Below are positions 32,351-42,373 of a stretch of DNA of 64,000 nucleotides, piece after piece (positions within the stretch are counted from its first letter, which is position 1; every line of letters begins with the position of its first letter). The stretch comes from Guillardia theta CCMP2712 (taxonomy: Eukaryota; Protista; Cryptophyta). The stretch spans positions 946,333 through 1,010,332 of the forward strand of contig NW_005434666.1 of NCBI RefSeq assembly GCF_000315625.1, read 5' to 3'. The translations under genes were made by a program, and so were the position numbers. Under the pieces are notes generated by a model. It made no database searches, was not told where the DNA came from, and worked only from the letters and a program-made list of their open reading frames with translations.

Positions 32351-35300
32351 TTACGAGTCGCCACTGCCTCCTTGCCCTGCTCCTCCTTCCCCTCCTCCCG
32401 CCGCCGCCGCCGCCGCCGCTGCAAGCTCCTCCTCGATCGAGATCAGCTGCGTTACCCCGTCGATCATCTTCTGCACGAGCTCCACCTCCGAGTACCCGAT
32501 CCTCTGCTTGTTCGAGATGTCCCACTTGGCTCCCACTGCCGCGCTGTGCTCCCCAGACGACCCGCGAGGCTGCAGGTCGTACTTGCGGCAGATCTCCTCA
32601 AGCCTCTTCGGGTCCTTGTTCAGCTCTGGTAGCACGATCATCACGCTCGCTCGCAGCCCCGTCCCGAGGTTCGACGGGCACGTCCCAAGGAAGCCCAGAC
32701 GCTCGTCGTACATCAGTGCCTGCCCCTTTCCCTCCGCCGCCGTCTTGATCGCCTCCGACAGCTGGCAGAACCGCGAGAACACCCCTTTCACGTCCCCTCC
32801 TTCCTCCATCGCGATGATCCTGCACTGGTCCTCCTCGTTGCACCAGCATAGTACCGTCTTCGCGTCGTTGTGGAAGATGCCTCGTCCTTCCGGCCAGTCC
32901 CGCCCTGCCCCTGCTGCTCCTAGTAGCTGCATCGGCCCTGGCTTCTGGAACAAGAAGCCTCCTGCCTGCAGGTCCTGCTCCTGCTCTGCCGACAGCGACC
33001 CAAGCGGGTAGTACGTGCCTTGCAGCGCCTCTGGCAGCGCCCCGAACGCCTCCTTCAGTACATCCTCGACCGCCAGACGGTCCTCTTTGCTGGACCCCGC
33101 CGGCAGTGAGTACCCGGAGATGTTCCGCGCTGCTCGCACTCGCGTCGACTTGACGTACTGGCTAAACTTCCCCTGCTGCTCCTCCGTGAACACAAGCTTC
33201 GTCGCATCCAGATCCGATCGGTGCTCCTGCATCTCCGGGTCGAAGCCATGCCAGCCCTTCACGATCGGGTAGATGATCTCCTTGAAAGCCTCGAAGCACT
33301 CCTGGTCTCCGCACGTGAAGCCTACTCCAAGGTGAGGCCGCAGCACCCCCGCCTGCATGCCGTTGGACAGCGAGTAGCCCTTGGAGGTCTTGACGCCCTT
33401 GAGCTTCTCGAACAGCTCGCTCGTCATGTGCTTCCGCATCAGCACCTGATGCTTCTCCGTGAACGGCGGCAGCTCAGTGAACGTGATGTACTTGAAGTCC
33501 TCCGTGTCCTTGGCGTCCGGCGACGAGGCGGCAAGCTGATCGGCGAGCCATCGGTCGAAGGCGGCATCGATCTCCGGCAGCTTGAAGCCGTCCTTGGACG
33601 ACCCATGGCTCTCGCCTGCTGTCGGTTCCGATCCTCCCCCTCCTCCTGCCTCTCCCTCGCCCTGAGCTTCTGAAAAGGATCCCTGCTGCACCGGCATCCA
33701 CGTCACTACAGACGGCTTAGACATAAAGTCTCCTTGCACTTCGCCCGCATGCCCCTGGTCTGCCCCTCCCGACCCTACGGGCCCCTCGCCCGATGCGGCC
33801 TCAGAGGCTTGCTCTCCTGCTCCCGACCCTCCTCCCGCCGCCGCCGCCGCCGCCGCCGCTGCAAGCTCCTCCTCGATCGAGATCAGCTGCGTTACCCCGT
33901 CGATCATCTTCTGCACGAGCTCCACCTCCGAGTACCCGATCCTCTGCTTGTTCGAGATGTCCCACTTGGCTCCCACTGCCGCGCTGTGCTCCCCAGACGA
34001 CCCGCGAGGCTGCAGGTCGTACTTGCGGCAGATCTCCTCAAGCCTCTTCGGGTCCTTGTTCAGCTCTGGTAGCACGATCATCACGCTCGCTCGCAGCCCC
34101 GTCCCGAGGTTCGACGGGCACGTCCCAAGGAAGCCCAGACGCTCGTCGTACATCAGTGCCTGCCCCTTCCCCTCCGCCGCCGTCTTGATCGCCTCCGACA
34201 GCTGGCAGAACCGCGAGAACACCCCCTTCACGTCCCCTCCTTCCTCCATCGCGATGATCCTGCACTGGTCCTCCTCGTTGCACCAGCATAGTACCGTCTT
34301 CGCGTCGTTGTGGAAGATGCCTCGTCCTTCCGGCCAGTCCCGCCCTGCCCCTGCTGCTCCTAGTAGCTGCATCGGCCCTGGCTTCTGGAACAAGAAGCCT
34401 CCTGCCTGCAGGTCCTGCTCCTGCTCTGCCGACAGCGACCCAAGCGGGTAGTACGTGCCTTGCAGCGCCTCTGGCAGCGCCCCGAACGCCTCCTTCAGTA
34501 CATCCTCGACCGCCAGACGGTCCTCTTTGCTGGACCCCGCCGGCAGTGAGTACCCGGAGATGTTCCGCGCTGCTCGCACTCGCGTCGACTTGACGTACTG
34601 GCTAAACTTCCCCTGCTGCTCCTCCGTGAACACAAGCTTCGTCGCATCCAGATCCGATCGGTGCTCCTGCATCTCCGGGTCGAAGCCATGCCAGCCCTTC
34701 ACGATCGGGTAGATGATCTCCTTGAAAGCCTCGAAGCACTCCTGGTCTCCGCACGTGAAGCCTACCCCAAGGTGAGGCCGCAGCACCCCCGCCTGCATGC
34801 CGTTGGACAGCGAGTAGCCCTTGGAGGTCTTGACGCCCTTGAGCTTCTCGAACAGCTCGCTCGTCATGTGCTTCCGCATCAGCGACTGATGCTTCTCCGT
34901 GAACGGCGGCAGCTCAGTGAACGTGATGTACTTGAAGTCCTCCGTGTCCTTGGCGTCCGGCGACGAGGCGGCCAGCTGATCGGCGAGCCATCGGTCGAAG
35001 GCGGCATCGATCTCCGGCAGCTTGAATGAGCTTGTTGACTGCTTGTTGTTGGAACTTTGCCTACCATTGTTTCCTTTCTCTTCTGACGGTACAATCTGTA
35101 CAAGATTGTAAGTATGCCGTTGAAGTTGAACAAGAATTATGGTTTTATATTACCTTGTGCTGACGTTCAAGACTCTCCTTGAGTTCTGCATTCTCTTTTT
35201 CAAGGATCTTGATTCTCTCTAGCAAATTTCCCTTTTGGGAGAAAGTGAGTCACATCCTTCTATCCTCACGATCCTCACCTTCTCAGTTTCGTTGTGCGGT

Positions 35301-36913: not shown

Positions 36914-38059
36914 CTAAAGGTCATCAACAGGGGTAAACACAACCTTTTCTCCTGGTTTGAACGGAGGCATTCCCTTGTAAGGGCAACCATCGCATCGGAA
37001 CCTGTCAACATTTGTTACTAGGCGTATGGCGCACAGCCCGAGCTTACGCATCTCCCAGGTAACAATTTCCGCAGGCTGATTTTGGCGCCTCAGTTGCTCC
37101 ATCCTGCTAAAGGTTAAATCTCGGTCACAATAACGAGGAAGAAGAAACCTCAGCCTGTTGTTTTGCCAGGCCGCACGTGCAATTCTTGCAAGCTTTCTTC
37201 TTTCTCGTTGGGTTGCAATTGGACGCATCGCCAGCCTTTGGCTGCGAGCGGCATCATTCGATGATATTTGAACACGAAAACGAGGAGCAGTGTGATGGAT
37301 CTACCTGATTGGGCTGCTGTTGACGCAGCGATTCGTCTGGCATCAGCTATTCAAGTTCACTAAGTTGTCGCTAAAACAAGATCTCATAGTTACCTCATTT
37401 TCGGAAACAAGATCATTTGAATCGAGGTCCTCGTTCATTGTGTTGCTTGTACGTGTTGCATCTGATACCTGTACAGGTTGGATTTGTGGCAGGAGTTTGT
37501 GAAAATGCTCAATCTCAGCCATGAGTCCACCGCTTTCTGCCAATTCCTATCGAAAATTTCAATCTTCAACTGGTATCAAATAAATGGATCATGCATACCT
37601 TAACAATCGAATGGTCTCCGACGAGTCTTCCGTTGATATGAAGCTGAGGGAAACTGCCCACAAAATCAACCTACAATCGTTGACATGCGCGACCCACAAC
37701 CTCTTCCATTGAACCTCGCGGGCTATCCGGCTCATCAGCAATGGGTCAGCCCCGACGTCATGCGACGTGTATTCTATCCCATGATCCCTCAAGATGCCTA
37801 CCAGCTCCCTGCTCTCCTGCGTCGTGGGCTCCTCGGGGGTACCATAGATGTAGACCACCGCAGTCTGCAATTGGCCCCCATGACCTCCTCTCAGGCACAG
37901 GGTCCTGCAGCGAGCTCCTGCGAGCATTCTTCCCTGGTGGAGACTGCTCTCCTTGCTGCTCCAGCTTCTCGTCTCTCCTCGCACGCAAACCAGTGCCAGC
38001 GCCAGCGCCAGCGCAAACCAGTGCACAGACCCCGCCATAGCCATAGCCAGGGCCCTCAT
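36914..38059 (-). CDS. DRE2: Signal peptide + LRGG leader + Cys-less monothiol-glutaredoxin-like domain fused to the Dre2/anamorsin (CIAPIN1) Fe-S domain
   Basis: Seven exons joined by six GT-AG introns with consistent phase: [168 protein letters not shown]. Confidence 0.9.
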
Positions 38060-39673
38060 ACAGCCCCTACCCCTCAGCCGGTCCAACTTGCGGTCCAACA
38101 GGGTTTGCTGCAAGGTCTACGTGATCGCTGCCGCCGTCCCCGTTGCCCGCTGCTCCGATCAATGATGCACAGGGAAAGTTTGAAGTGGAGGGAGATGAGA
38201 TTTGACTAAGAACCCACACATAGTTTGCAAAGCCACGCCCCAGGAATTAAGAAATCAGCTGTCAGGTGCAGGTACGAGATGAATTCTTTGGGATGAAATG
38301 TGTGGCAGGTGGGGGGCTTGACATCCACGGGGGGAAACTATGAATTGATTGCTCAGATGACGAAACTGAAACAGGAGAAGACAATCCAAATGAAAGCATC
38401 GGAATTTCTCGACCCTGAATATGATACTAGACAGGGCGATGGGAGAGCACTGGTTGAACATTTGCTGCAGAGACAAAGATGTGATTGAAGAGGAGACTAT
38501 GTCTTGATATCGCTAGGAGGTTGTTGATCTGACAAGAAGCCATCTCAATCGTCAACGTCTCCACCTCATCAGCCCTTCCCTTGAAGAGCAACAGTCAAGC
38601 CACAAACTCGAAAATCCAAGCCCCCACATCTGTAAAACTTAAAAAGGGGGAATAAAAGTTTAATACAACTCCTCAAATATTTGTATCGTTACTGTTTAAG
38701 TTCGAAATTTTGAGAAGGTCTTGAACTTATTGATTCAAAAGGCAATTTCCAGGGAAAAGGAATGTGGCAGGGGGGTAGAAGGCTGGTGGTGGGGGGTGGA
38801 TATCACCCGTGAGGGGGGTGAAAGATATCAGCAAGGGGGTACTAATGGACAACGATTGGAACGAATCGTCACAGGAGGGTTATTGCAATTTGGGAGGGGT
38901 GGGGGGTATGATCCACGACAACATGAGTGGGTGATTGACAGAGATTTGTTTTCAAAAAGATGAGGTAGGGTACTCTACCCCACCCTCGAAATTAACACAT
39001 CCGCCTCAGATTCTTGTTGGTACCGGTGACCACTTTCACTACCCCCTTATCTGTACCGCATTTTGCTACCCCTACCCCGTCCGATAGGCGGCGATACAAG
39101 GTCGGGTCCCCAACATTTACCACCCTACCACGAAAGAAAAAGTTTTGTACCCATTGTGTACATCCCCTGGCGACTACCCGTCCATGAACCATCAAAGTAC
39201 CCCTTGTTGCTGATATTGGTGCCAACACAAAAAAGTACCCCACCCTACCTCTTCACCACCCCTTTGGTACAGGTACCCCCCACCCCCAAAACGTCCCCAT
39301 ACATCTGTGCCCCGGATCAGCTTCCTTTACTTCCAGTCGCTGCGTCCCCGTTTCCGTCCTCCCCCTTCCCCCCTCCTCGCCCTCAACCCAGTCGATCCTC
39401 CTCCTCTTATCTTTCCCCTTCCATCTGATAGTAGCTCCTCTGCCCCTTGTGCAGTGCTCATTCCTATTGCCTGACATCATACGGTGCCTGGAATACCTTG
39501 GAAACTGAGAACAAGGACAGTTGCATTCCGAATACTTCCGAATCTTTGGGTATATCATGGGAAAGCTATGCATGAGATAAGGTTGATTTGGGTGTGATTG
39601 ATTCAGAACTGTTGTGTCATGATGCACAAAGATACAAAACACATTTATCGGGGTTGAAGCGTTTTAGGGAAGT

Positions 39674-42373
39674 ATGCAACATAAATCAAGGCACAAGTCG
39701 GACAAGAGAAATGTAAGCCCGACGGGTCCAGACAAACTAGATGTAGATCCTCATGATTGGAGTTTGAAGAAGACTTTTTGGATGTTCATCATCTCACAAG
39801 CTGTTTTGTTGTATGTCTTCTCGCACATCATATGCCAAAGTGATCCAGAAGAGCACAAGAGATTGCTCATGGAGATCAAGCAGCAGTTCATCAACAAGCA
39901 GAGCTCCATTTCATCTCTTGATCCCAAGGCAGTATCATTGTCAGTTGGAAAATCCGCTACGAGCACAAGGATGGAGGCTGCCAAACCTATCGTAAGCAAT
40001 GTTCGACTTGATCCGATCATGCCCAACTCTCAGGCAAAGAATGAAGTTGTTCGATCCAACGAAAGTCCGGCGATACCACGTGTGGACGTCAGTACGAACA
40101 AGCCCGACGGAAAGTCAAGTCCTCTTGTCAACGCACCTCTTGTTAACGCACCACTCGCGAGCAAGGCTGAGCAGCCAGCTCTCGCTGCAGCTCCGAAGGT
40201 GCAGCTGGAACCAAGTCTGCAAGTCGCACCAGCGTCGGGGGGCGTGCGGGCACCTGATGAGCGAGCAAAGTCGGGACAGGGCGTGTTTCGTCTGATGGTC
40301 CTCACATGCAATAGACCGGAGGCTCTCAAACGCCTGCTGGCCTCGCTCAAGGGCGCGGACTATATGGGGCGTACAGCCAACCTCCACGTGTTCCAGGACC
40401 TCCTCGTGAGTGGGACGGCAGACGCGGACACTAAGAAGATCCTGCAGGACTTCCAGTGGCCGTTTGGATCTAAGAATATTGATGTAGCGAGAACCCGACA
40501 AGGCCTTCTCCTGTCCTTTGTGAATGCGTGGAAGCCGTCTGGGCCGGCCGATGACAACGATGTCGCAATTTTCTTTGAGGACGATATTCAGGTGTCTCCT
40601 TTTTTTGCCAAGTGGTACCTTGAAGCGCATGAGAGATTCCGGTACGATGCGTCTGTTTGTGTCTTCTCGGCCATGCGAGCACAACTGCGAGCCAGCGATC
40701 CCCATGGAGAAGGAGAACTCGGAAATTCCTTACCTGGCGATGTCAACGTTTTCAAGTACAGACTCGTAGGGACGACATCTCTATCCCCTCTGGCAAGTCA
40801 GTGGATCGAGTTCAGAACTTGGTTTGAACAGGCCTCCAAAAATCCCAACTTCTCCCCTGTTGTCGAGGGGATTCAGCCCACAATCTGGTACTTGGACTTG
40901 AAGAATACCGGGAATGAAGACAAGATGTGGGTCATGTGGTACATTAAATTCATGTCAGATCGCAACTACTACTGCGTGTATCCTTGGATACCCAGCAGAC
41001 ATGCTCTCGTGGCAAAGTGGAACGATGCAGATGCAAGAGCGGGGAACCAGCTGTTTGCCGACAACAGGCTTGTTGATTCTTGGGATCGAAACTTGGTCGT
41101 CTGGCCTTCTTACGTCCCAACACTTGACTGGAACGGTCATGACAAGATGCTGCAGCCGCAAGTGTTGAGGCAGAGGCTGTCCTGCGATGGCAAGACATCC
41201 ACTCTCAACCTCCCGAAGTTGCAGGCGGCCATGCAGGGCATGCCCAAGGATGTCGTCATTCTGCATTTCATCAACAGTGCATTCATGCCATTCATGCTGT
41301 CCTGGCTCTGCAACACGCAGCAGATGACAGGAGTGCATGAAAGGACCCTCGTGATAACAACTGACGCTGGGAGCGAAGAGAGAGTCAAAAGATTCTCGAG
41401 CAGAGTTCATGCCATGTACCTGGAAGGATACAACGGCATCAATGGCAACTTGGATTTTGATTCTTTGGGTTATCGCAGGATGCTGAAAGCTAGAATCGAG
41501 ATCATCATCTCCGTGCTACAGAAATCCGATCTCTTGTTTCTCACCGAGCCAGACGCCATCTGGATGAACAATCTTTTGGAGATCAAGGAATTCGTTAACT
41601 CGCCGAGTGATCTGATAGGATTCGACGATGAACAGGGGGGGAAGGGAGCAGGGTTTGTGCTCATGCGTAACAATGCGGCAATCAGCTGCCTGTGGAGGAA
41701 GCTGCTGGAGAGACAAGAGTTAACGTTGGCGCCCTACGAGGGTCAGCCCAACGAGATTGTAACGTATGACGACAACGACCAGAAGTACTTCAACGCCCTC
41801 ATCCAAGACATGGAGGCCGCGGGCATGATGAAATCATCTACCATGGACACGTGCAAGTTCCGAACGGGGAAGTGGTACAAGAGGGAGGAGTGGAAAGACT
41901 ACATGACGTGCCTAAACATCGTCCCTGATATCCTCAACTTCAACTGGATGGTCGGCAACCAGCCAAAGATCCAGCGAGCGAAGCTGTACGGCCACTGGTT
42001 CCTAGAGGAGGACGGGCAGACTTGCAAGCCCATCCAAGAAACTCTAGCGCGAGCAAAAACTTCCTTCACTGGCGGTTTTTCAGCGGGGCAGGTGGCCTTA
42101 CCCTCGCCCCAGATTCCTTTTTCCCAGCCCGCGATACCGGGAAACAATTTCGCTCCCTCGCAGTTCAATTTTGCCGGGCAAGGGAACCCGTCCAACTCCT
42201 TGGGGCTGGGCTATCAGCCCATGGTCAACTCACAGCAGGTACAGCAGGGAGGGCAGTCGAACAACCCGTACGGAAGGTTCCGGATCAACCCGGCGGTCCA
42301 CCAGAGGATCAACAGCCTTCTAGCCGAACGATTCCGCCGTGTGGGATCTGTACGGCATTCGACGAAGCGATAG
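39674..42373 (+). CDS. Type II membrane glycosyltransferase with two catalytic domains (GT-A/GT2-like + GT77 nucleotide-diphospho-sugar transferase)
   Basis: N-terminal TM (FWMFIISQAVLLYVFSHII) and Pro/Ala stem. Domain 1: VLTCNRPEALKRLLASL..FFEDDIQVSP. Domain 2: FINSAFMPFMLSWLCN..TEPDAIW..GFVLMR..NDQKYFN..NWMVGNQPKIQRAK..HWFL. Intronless 899 aa. Confidence 0.85.
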   Translation: MQHKSRHKSDKRNVSPTGPDKLDVDPHDWSLKKTFWMFIISQAVLLYVFSHIICQSDPEEHKRLLMEIKQQFINKQSSISSLDPKAVSLSVGKSATSTRMEAAKPIVSNVRLDPIMPNSQAKNEVVRSNESPAIPRVDVSTNKPDGKSSPLVNAPLVNAPLASKAEQPALAAAPKVQLEPSLQVAPASGGVRAPDERAKSGQGVFRLMVLTCNRPEALKRLLASLKGADYMGRTANLHVFQDLLVSGTADADTKKILQDFQWPFGSKNIDVARTRQGLLLSFVNAWKPSGPADDNDVAIFFEDDIQVSPFFAKWYLEAHERFRYDASVCVFSAMRAQLRASDPHGEGELGNSLPGDVNVFKYRLVGTTSLSPLASQWIEFRTWFEQASKNPNFSPVVEGIQPTIWYLDLKNTGNEDKMWVMWYIKFMSDRNYYCVYPWIPSRHALVAKWNDADARAGNQLFADNRLVDSWDRNLVVWPSYVPTLDWNGHDKMLQPQVLRQRLSCDGKTSTLNLPKLQAAMQGMPKDVVILHFINSAFMPFMLSWLCNTQQMTGVHERTLVITTDAGSEERVKRFSSRVHAMYLEGYNGINGNLDFDSLGYRRMLKARIEIIISVLQKSDLLFLTEPDAIWMNNLLEIKEFVNSPSDLIGFDDEQGGKGAGFVLMRNNAAISCLWRKLLERQELTLAPYEGQPNEIVTYDDNDQKYFNALIQDMEAAGMMKSSTMDTCKFRTGKWYKREEWKDYMTCLNIVPDILNFNWMVGNQPKIQRAKLYGHWFLEEDGQTCKPIQETLARAKTSFTGGFSAGQVALPSPQIPFSQPAIPGNNFAPSQFNFAGQGNPSNSLGLGYQPMVNSQQVQQGGQSNNPYGRFRINPAVHQRINSLLAERFRRVGSVRHSTKR

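Follow-up and report, generated by a model that had tools for sequence, protein, structure and literature searches.

The gene GUITHDRAFT_161264 lies in the nuclear DNA of the cryptophyte Guillardia theta CCMP2712, on the minus strand of contig 8 (also scaffold 8), within a 64,000-nucleotide (nt) stretch that we refer to as the window. From its N- to its C-terminus the product carries a predicted bipartite leader, a glutaredoxin (Grx)-fold domain, a predicted disordered linker and the CIAPIN1 domain of the iron-sulphur (Fe-S) assembly factor Dre2, also known as anamorsin (coordinates in Table 1). We call this protein PPC Dre2, after the periplastid compartment (PPC) to which its leader appears to be directed. 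The start ATG is at 38059 and the TAG stop ends at 36914, and six short introns must be removed for the frame to reach that stop. Scripted splicing of donor and acceptor sites gives a coding sequence of 846 nt, i.e., a protein of 281 amino acids (aa), and upstream of 38059 the open frame holds no further in-frame ATG. A first-pass annotation, made from the letters of the window, had proposed that six canonical introns join three open reading frame (ORF) fragments in frame between 36914 and 38059; splicing returned the same model with the same coordinates, and transcripts back it.

The NCBI model of this gene (P0002, 253 aa) is mis-spliced at two places. A later acceptor is used for intron 2, by which 26 residues of the Grx fold are lost, and a spurious extra 3' intron replaces the C-terminal VVFTPVDDL. 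The 253-aa model was ruled out by the RNA that supports the 281-aa model, which is thus a practical correction to the public annotation.

A single mRNA covers both parts of the gene

Logan transcript contigs from the runs X1, X2 and X9, which belong to three separate studies, each cover the seven exons in one record and skip 46, 45, 63, 47, 52 and 47 nt exactly at the predicted introns. The skipped stretches have CT..AC ends on the plus strand, which corresponds to GT..AG on the minus strand, and the stranded raw RNA-seq run X22 holds reads only in the orientation of a minus-strand transcript, with junction reads at introns 6 and 3. Read depth within the introns is close to zero in the RNA data. 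Sampled sequence words of the locus are present at a fraction of about 0.6 in RNA-type runs versus 1.0 in DNA runs, which is what a lack of the intron words should give. All six junctions, for which RNA-seq had been proposed as a check, are therefore found in contigs of three studies, and these contigs exclude the alternative of separate transcripts for the Grx-like and the Dre2 exons. That the three ORF fragments lie together by chance or have nothing to do with each other is likewise ruled out by the transcripts, which span all seven exons.

Predicted products from transcript collections agree with the model. The G. theta product P0001 from MMETSP is identical to it at residues 1-203 and then reads into a retained intron 4, and the transcript product of Hanusia phi (P0004, 277 aa) agrees with it through the last residue (...VDDL). 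Exon 3 encodes the end of the Grx fold, with its last helix, as well as the acidic motif of the Dre2 linker, so that the fusion exists at the DNA level, beyond the adjacency of exons, and in the environmental orthologue P0005 a single ORF without interruption, on a contig of 10.5 kb, encodes the whole protein. The Grx-like and Dre2 parts are encoded by a single mRNA.

We would like to note that the contigs from X1, X2 and X9 also show no splicing 5' of the ATG, where they run on for over 240 nt, and for as much as about 560 nt, across 38060-38300 of the window and beyond. This stretch is either a long 5' untranslated region or an overlap with the transcript of the divergent neighbouring gene.

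The architecture is rare and apparently cryptophyte-specific

Relatives were sought among 5.8 billion clustered proteins and, exhaustively, among 1.84 billion representatives. Proteins with both domains (Grx plus CIAPIN1) were found in Guillardia, in Hanusia, in Geminigera cryophila (P0122, MMETSP0799) and in a few environmental sequences at 37-54 % identity, whereas the remaining CIAPIN1 matches in those protein searches were all canonical. Orthologues with this layout are P0004 of Hanusia, P0122 of Geminigera and the environmental sequences P0005, P0006, P0123, P0124 and P0133. No ESM Atlas cluster of at least 50 members has a Grx plus CIAPIN1 layout. On present evidence the architecture is rare and specific to cryptophytes; the idea that it might be widespread found no support, the few relatives among the 5.8 billion clustered proteins all being cryptophyte-type sequences.

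An automatic two-domain annotation already exists in databases, e.g., the UniRef entry "Anamorsin homolog" for Hanusia. We found no description of a Grx-Dre2/anamorsin fusion in full-text searches or in surveys of the cytosolic iron-sulphur protein assembly (CIA) pathway that cite Tsaousis 2014, which agrees with the first-pass annotation, whose author knew of none.

The Dre2 half is intact and lacks the canonical N-terminal domain

Both Cys motifs of Dre2 are kept in G. theta and in all orthologues, and motif I fits the family pattern C-x(5-14)-C-x2-C-x-C. The Pfam profile CIAPIN1 (PF05093) scores 71.6 bits in G. theta P0002 and 72-82 bits in the orthologues, with a cutoff of 22. The 13-residue acidic stretch of the linker and the 14-residue stretch that follows Cys motif II are both present in the 281-aa product, and the C-terminal tail, which begins PY and runs on for 12 more residues in the pattern PY-x-G-x-P-x-FKPGEKV, is intact. 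An acidic linker and two intact Dre2 motifs had been read from the letters beforehand, and all three could be verified, the motifs at aa 212-226 and 245-259.

The only Pfam domains in the fusion proteins are CIAPIN1 and Glutaredoxin. Anamorsin_N (PF20922), PF08241 and PF13847 have zero matches in the seven fusion proteins, whereas the canonical anamorsins of the same search have them, and the methyltransferase-like N-domain that had been called absent is indeed missing from the Pfam results. The G. theta protein thus shares with canonical Dre2/anamorsin the CIAPIN1 domain, both Cys motifs, the acidic DL-x-(D/S)-x-x-L linker motif and the PY-x-G-x-P-x-FKPGEKV tail. In contrast to canonical Dre2, it has a Cys-less Grx fold in place of Anamorsin_N and bears a predicted N-terminal bipartite leader.

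A class II glutaredoxin fold without its active site forms the N-terminal domain

The ancestry of the Grx-like domain was approached by both sequence and structure. Pfam Glutaredoxin (PF00462) scores 27-34 bits (cutoff 22.9), with a match that spans profile positions of about 12-60 and leaves the active site outside. The best NCBIfam model is TIGR00365, the Grx4-family monothiol glutaredoxins, at about 50-54 bits, which is below its cutoff of 117.1. Matches to sequences in the PDB are monothiol (class II) glutaredoxins in 13 out of 13 cases (T. brucei 1-C-Grx1, Grx3/GLRX3, GLRX5 and GrxS14), and in an exhaustive HMMER search the next best proteins after the orthologues are multi-Grx proteins of the PICOT/GRXS17 type, with three matches each.

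The AlphaFold2 model of the Hanusia protein reaches a predicted local distance difference test score (pLDDT) of 94-98 at residues of about 61-152, and the rest of the chain is disordered. All of the top 12 Foldseek matches of the modelled domain are class II (GrxS14, both Grx domains of GLRX3, Grx5, Grx3 and GLRX5), with a root-mean-square deviation (rmsd) of 0.8-1.6 A for most, and the top match is the GrxS14-BolA2 heterodimer. In the model the domain begins at strand 1, i.e., without the N-terminal helix of class II glutaredoxins. Both the sequence matches and the predicted structure place the N-terminal domain among the class II glutaredoxins in ancestry and fold.

It shares with the class II (CGFS) domains of Grx3/PICOT/GLRX3, Grx5 and GrxS14 the fold (about 1 A rmsd), 26-35 % identity, the W-x-x-x-PQL cis-Pro loop and the length; it differs from them in having no CGFS Cys, no GG-x-D motif and no N-terminal helix, and in a score of about 50 bits, which falls short of the cutoff (117). 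The Cys-less Grx-fold proteins of the SH3BGRL3 type, which appear among the weaker Foldseek matches (ranks 21, 22 and 35), likewise have the fold without redox Cys and put it to a non-redox use, but there is no specific sequence kinship with them, the G. theta domain being clearly derived from class II glutaredoxins. The earlier description as a monothiol (PICOT-type) fold therefore stands as to the fold and fails as to the thiol, since the active-site Cys is a Thr (PTTQES versus PxCGFS).

When the fused domains are aligned to the canonical reference (KGTPxxP-C-GFS ... WPTFPQL ... GGLDI), the loss extends to all seven orthologues. The position of the CGFS Cys holds Thr in Guillardia and Hanusia and, in the others, Ser, Leu, Ala or a four-residue deletion, the last in P0124. 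The GG-x-D glutathione motif, GG-L-D-I in the reference, is replaced by GD-x-x-I, in the forms GD-H-S-I (GDHSI in G. theta), GD-Y-E-I and GD-L-x-x, and no Lys or Arg precedes the Cys position in the aligned fused domains. Over the whole domain there are no Cys residues in Guillardia and Hanusia, and a single non-conserved one in each other orthologue. With no CGFS Cys, no GG-x-D and no conserved Cys, the domain would not hold a canonical glutathione-ligated [2Fe-2S] cluster; judged from its residues it is a pseudo-glutaredoxin, for which canonical ligation or donation of such a cluster is impossible.

Other parts of the domain have persisted. The WKSFPQL cis-Pro loop is present in G. theta, and the motifs WK[ST]FPQLH, NGRL and GD recur among the orthologues, within a longer run that opens with WK[ST] and continues for 24 more letters. 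Identity to G. theta in six orthologues is 72/51/49/42/31/39 % in the Grx-like domain, compared with 51/25/23/13/15/21 % in the linker and 84/67/67/57/71/68 % in the CIAPIN1 core. Because the domain is conserved well above the linker, a structural or docking role is most likely.

The leader is probably of periplastid type

The leader combines a strong hydrophobic core and plausible -3/-1 sites with a following net-basic stretch of 25-35 residues, and the orthologues are alike in this. Cleavage sites were judged by hydropathy and a crude -3/-1 rule, without SignalP. The likeliest +1 residue by that rule is Glu in Guillardia and Hanusia and Ile or Ser in the others, and an alternative site in G. 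theta gives Trp. A signal peptide with a residue other than Phe at +1, followed by a transit-like segment ending LCLRGG, had been claimed for this gene; the predicted design is indeed of the periplastid kind, with Glu as the likeliest +1 residue, and LRGG was located at aa 56-59.

Grosche et al. 2018 (PMC6105332) described a second CIA pathway, complete in its components, in the PPC of G. theta; it includes a PPC Dre2, ProtID 199508, which was amplified from cDNA and, as a full-length fusion to green fluorescent protein (GFP), localised to the PPC "blob" of Phaeodactylum. Nbp35, Nar1, Tah18 and a "Grx3" were localised alongside it (PMC6105332). Exon-wise matches to the CIAPIN1 profile occur at just two loci of the G. 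theta genome, and the leader is on the one described here, so that JGI ProtID 199508 is almost certainly this gene. With that identity inferred, the leader-GFP experiment suggested for this gene has in effect been done, and its assignment to the symbiont compartment is supported by the leader design and the published localisation (PMC6105332). The published protein, localised to the PPC by GFP, and the one analysed here have in common the species and the combination of Dre2 with a bipartite leader (predicted in the latter), but the main text of that paper is silent on a glutaredoxin domain, a fusion or a missing N-domain (PMC6105332).

A second Dre2 and a periplastid-type Grx-BolA protein

The second Dre2 locus of the genome, on contig 16 (G000:C16:220801-221093 (-), L001/L004), has both Cys motifs and stretches that resemble the N-domain and linker of canonical Dre2. 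Its N-domain signals are weak at the exon level (Methyltransf_31, E 0.05; tblastn, E 0.27), and a genome search with Anamorsin_N (PF20922) matched three unrelated methyltransferase-like loci and left the contig-16 Dre2 unmatched. The intron in Cys motif II is placed differently in this gene and in PPC Dre2, which suggests an old paralogy. A check for a separate, leaderless host Dre2 had been proposed; a second, canonical-looking locus is there.

Five monothiol-Grx loci were found in the genome. The one on contig 42 (G000:C42:568435-569212 (+), L009/L034) encodes a predicted signal peptide, an S/P-rich stretch ending MRLRGG and an intact CGFS domain (QPQCGFS, GGLDI), and a BolA domain follows on from its last Grx helix within one open frame. 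NCBI splits this locus in two: a partial Grx (P0278), beginning where MRLRGG-S ends, and a "BolA-like protein" (P0277). The intron-split BolA domain was missed by a Pfam scan of the L009 frames; it was confirmed by genome search and by P0277. Class II glutaredoxins bind BolA proteins. To judge by its leader and active site, this CGFS-Grx-BolA protein is most likely the PPC's own active monothiol Grx, and it is a good candidate for the PPC "Grx3" localised by Grosche et al. (PMC6105332).

Grx-BolA fusions, of which the contig-42 gene and a bacterial cluster of the same layout are examples, are the Rosetta-stone precedent in Fe-S trafficking and resemble the gene studied here in fusing a monothiol Grx fold to an Fe-S partner. 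They differ from it in that CGFS is kept, whereas the Dre2 fusion has an inactive Grx half and Dre2 as its partner. At a further locus (G000:C53:530801-531176 (+), L015) the open frame of a monothiol Grx (APQCGFS) goes on downstream with rhodanese-like sequence, possibly as a Grx-rhodanese fusion; an Atlas cluster with a Grx-rhodanese layout is bacterial.

Banci et al. 2015 reportedly found that the thioredoxin (Trx) domain of Grx3 binds the N-domain of anamorsin. Of this canonical docking pair, both halves are missing from the PPC proteins: the PPC Grx-BolA candidate is without the Trx domain of PICOT and has a BolA tail, and PPC Dre2 is without the N-domain.

An LRGG motif ends the leaders of three CIA pre-proteins

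LRGG is the C-terminus of ubiquitin. In PPC Dre2 it lies in the disordered part of the model, about 14 residues ahead of strand 1, and every orthologue with an N-terminus has CLRGG, LRLRGA, MRLRGG or LRLRGG shortly before the Grx fold. The LRGG-type end is kept in Hanusia, Geminigera and four environmental PPC-Dre2 sequences, and in orthologues down to 37 % identity (five species-level sequences). The leader of the contig-42 Grx-BolA protein ends MRLRGG, three residues ahead of helix 1, and an Nbp35 on contig 39 with a ferredoxin-like Cys motif has a signal peptide, an intron and a leader ending ...GFIRLRGG. LRGG thus sits at the boundary of leader and mature part in three CIA pre-proteins (37894-37883 (-) in the window, L009:1069-1491 (+) and L026:938-1200 (+)); its chance expectation in a 60-residue leader is about 0.002. 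The Nar1 frame on contig 33 has no LRGG, and the match to a second Nar1-like locus (contig 271) is too weak for a leader to be read. No literature linking LRGG with Guillardia was found in the papers searched. The LRGG end of the leader is a more surprising feature of the locus than the pseudo-Grx fusion.

Coordinates and neighbouring genes

Table 1. Features of the PPC Dre2 gene and its product, in window coordinates.
Feature	Position	Strand	Description	Basis
Whole coding region	36914..38059	-	7 exons, 6 introns, 281 aa	Spliced model, transcripts, database proteins P0001/P0002/P0004
Exon 1	38059-37701	-
Exon 2	37653-37599	-
Exon 3	37546-37394	-
Exon 4	37346-37305	-
Exon 5	37241-37149	-
Exon 6	37103-37048	-
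Exon 7	37001-36914	-
Intron 1	37654..37700	-	47 nt, GT-AG	Splice model, transcripts
Intron 2	37547..37598	-	52 nt, GT-AG	Splice model, transcripts
Intron 3	37347..37393	-	47 nt, GT-AG	Splice model, transcripts
Intron 4	37242..37304	-	63 nt, GT-AG; retained in MMETSP transcript P0001	Splice model, transcripts
Intron 5	37104..37148	-	45 nt, GT-AG	Splice model, transcripts
Intron 6	37002..37047	-	46 nt, GT-AG	Splice model, transcripts; six junction reads in raw RNA-seq run X22
Predicted signal peptide	37976..38059	-	aa 1-28; hydrophobic core of 11 residues; likeliest cleavage VRG|E	Hydropathy, -3/-1 rule
Transit-peptide-like stretch	37883..37975	-	aa 29-59, net basic, ends LRGG (aa 56-59, 37894-37883)	Composition, orthologues, disordered in model
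Class II Grx-fold domain, Cys-less	37505..37864	-	aa 66-152; interrupted by introns 1 and 2	Pfam, NCBIfam, PDB, model, Foldseek
Degenerate active-site loop	37843-37811	-	11 residues, within the Grx-fold domain
Predicted disordered linker	37236..37504	-	aa 153-205; 19-residue acidic Dre2 motif at 37429-37326, across intron 3	Alignment, low pLDDT
Dre2 Cys motif I	37173..37217	-	aa 212-226, C-x8-C-x2-C-x-C, exon 5	Motif check, Pfam CIAPIN1
Dre2 Cys motif II	36983..37073	-	aa 245-259, C-x2-C-x7-C-x2-C, split by intron 6	Pfam CIAPIN1, junction reads

The neighbouring genes are unrelated to PPC Dre2. A nucleotide-sugar transferase-like gene lies at 39674-42373 (+), and at 32351-34879 (-) an 842-aa open frame consists of two complete ATP:guanido phosphotransferase units (arginine/creatine-kinase type) in tandem. 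The two units form a near-perfect internal duplication of about 1.4 kb, such that the antisense ORFs 32508-33011 and 33948-34451 are identical.

Proposed role of the pseudo-glutaredoxin and meaning for the periplastid CIA pathway

We favour, with a probability of roughly 70 %, the reading that the gene encodes a PPC paralogue of Dre2 in which a pseudo-Grx has taken the place of the N-domain, with a CIAPIN1 half that transfers electrons and a Grx fold with a structural or docking role. The gene structure, the single mRNA, the domain content, the Cys loss and the conservation in cryptophytes are direct observations; the PPC localisation and the PPC CIA pathway are taken from the literature (PMC6105332). 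By its family membership and the published PPC pathway, the CIAPIN1 half, with two Cys motifs that would bind Fe-S clusters, would most likely, once imported, accept electrons from PPC Tah18 and support [4Fe-4S] assembly on PPC Nbp35. The pseudo-Grx, conserved without its catalytic residues, would act as a stabilising or docking module in place of the methyltransferase-like N-domain, and one possibility is that it may tether Dre2 to the PPC's active CGFS-Grx-BolA protein or to another CIA partner.

Several points weigh against this reading. Docking is without direct support: the pseudo-Grx was modelled in complex with a single partner, the BolA module P0277, and the median of 0.31 against a mark of 0.34, with one control at 0.46, amounts to no verdict and is not used as evidence. 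Going by sequence, ligation of a cluster by residues other than Cys (His, Asp or Ser, together with glutathione) is possible for the Grx-like domain, and the Fe-S binding and Tah18 coupling of this protein are predictions made from its family. Signal-peptide cleavage is placed by a crude rule, one alternative site of which puts Trp at +1, and ProtID 199508 is equated with this locus by inference, so that the published localisation carries over via that equation (PMC6105332).

The rival that survives best, although we think it unlikely, is that the domain is a relic, or a folding or solubility cap with no specific partner, in which an ancestral fusion lost its activity and the fold now stabilises a disordered Dre2. 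The predicted disorder of the rest of the protein speaks for it, as do the differing decay of the active site between orthologues, including the four-residue deletion in P0124, and the lack of a verdict with the single partner modelled. Yet the conservation sits in surface-loop motifs among sequences that are 31-51 % identical, which exceeds the usual need of fold maintenance, and the canonical Dre2 N-domain, in whose place the fold stands, is reportedly the docking site of Grx3.

The first-pass annotation had seen here a Rosetta-stone fusion of donor fold and acceptor, i.e., an active [2Fe-2S] donor in cis to Dre2 that would make a self-loading Fe-S module for a compartment without a mitochondrion. 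The class II fold and ancestry, the conservation of the domain and the physical Grx3-Dre2 interaction in many organisms (PMC11126956) would suit such a donor, but we consider it very improbable. The ligand Cys is substituted or deleted in seven of seven orthologues and GG-x-D has become GD-x-x; the Guillardia and Hanusia domains have zero Cys; the Pfam match leaves out the active-site positions; and the genome encodes an active CGFS Grx apart from it, behind a PPC-type leader. The premise that Grx3 delivers the clusters of anamorsin is itself contested: the physical Grx-Dre2 interaction is conserved, but human CIAPIN1 acquires its clusters without GLRX3, which is dispensable for this loading in human cells, and in yeast the CIA pathway still functions when the cytosolic Grxs are lost (Braymer et al. 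2024, PMC11126956). A fold that was kept while its Cys was dropped fits the view that binding matters and hand-over does not. Of the earlier interpretation as a whole, the architecture and the compartment have held and the donor function of the Grx half has not.

We know of no role for Dre2 in the endoplasmic reticulum (ER) or the plastid stroma. That the leader, judged by simple rules and with an alternative cleavage exposing the stromal signal Trp at +1, sends the protein into the ER/secretory path or the stroma is the least probable alternative, given the likeliest +1 residues (Glu in Guillardia and Hanusia, non-aromatic in the other orthologues), the same LRGG-ending leader on the candidate PPC Grx-BolA and on Nbp35, and the full-length GFP fusion of G. 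theta PPC Dre2 in the Phaeodactylum PPC (PMC6105332).

More tentatively, and as an idea that we hold rather less likely to be right than wrong, the LRGG end could be a mimic of the ubiquitin tail that marks the maturation site of PPC pre-proteins. For the fusion itself, the idea would be that both halves of the canonical docking pair were replaced in the PPC, by BolA on the Grx and by the pseudo-Grx on Dre2, and that these replacements now dock to each other. A PPC peptidase of the deubiquitinase type may cut after LRGG following import through the SELMA translocon, which derives from the machinery of ER-associated degradation (ERAD). If true, LRGG cleavage would add a so far undescribed processing step to import into complex plastids. 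LRGG is present on three CIA proteins and its conservation extends over several species, so that the maturation of PPC pre-proteins can be tested directly through it.

As a PPC CIA factor the gene is not new (PMC6105332); the variant with a pseudo-Grx in the place of the N-domain is undescribed. That Grx and Dre2 are naturally fused supports, independently and at the level of the genome, a physical link between the two proteins, the functional meaning of which is currently debated (PMC11126956), and the missing Cys speaks for binding, rather than cluster hand-over, as what has been conserved between them. The cryptophyte PPC runs a second, mitochondrion-less CIA pathway for the nucleomorph, and PPC Dre2 shows that this pathway is no simple copy: the Grx3-docking N-domain is gone and a dead Grx fold stands in its place, while the predicted active monothiol Grx of the compartment has lost its Trx domain and gained BolA.

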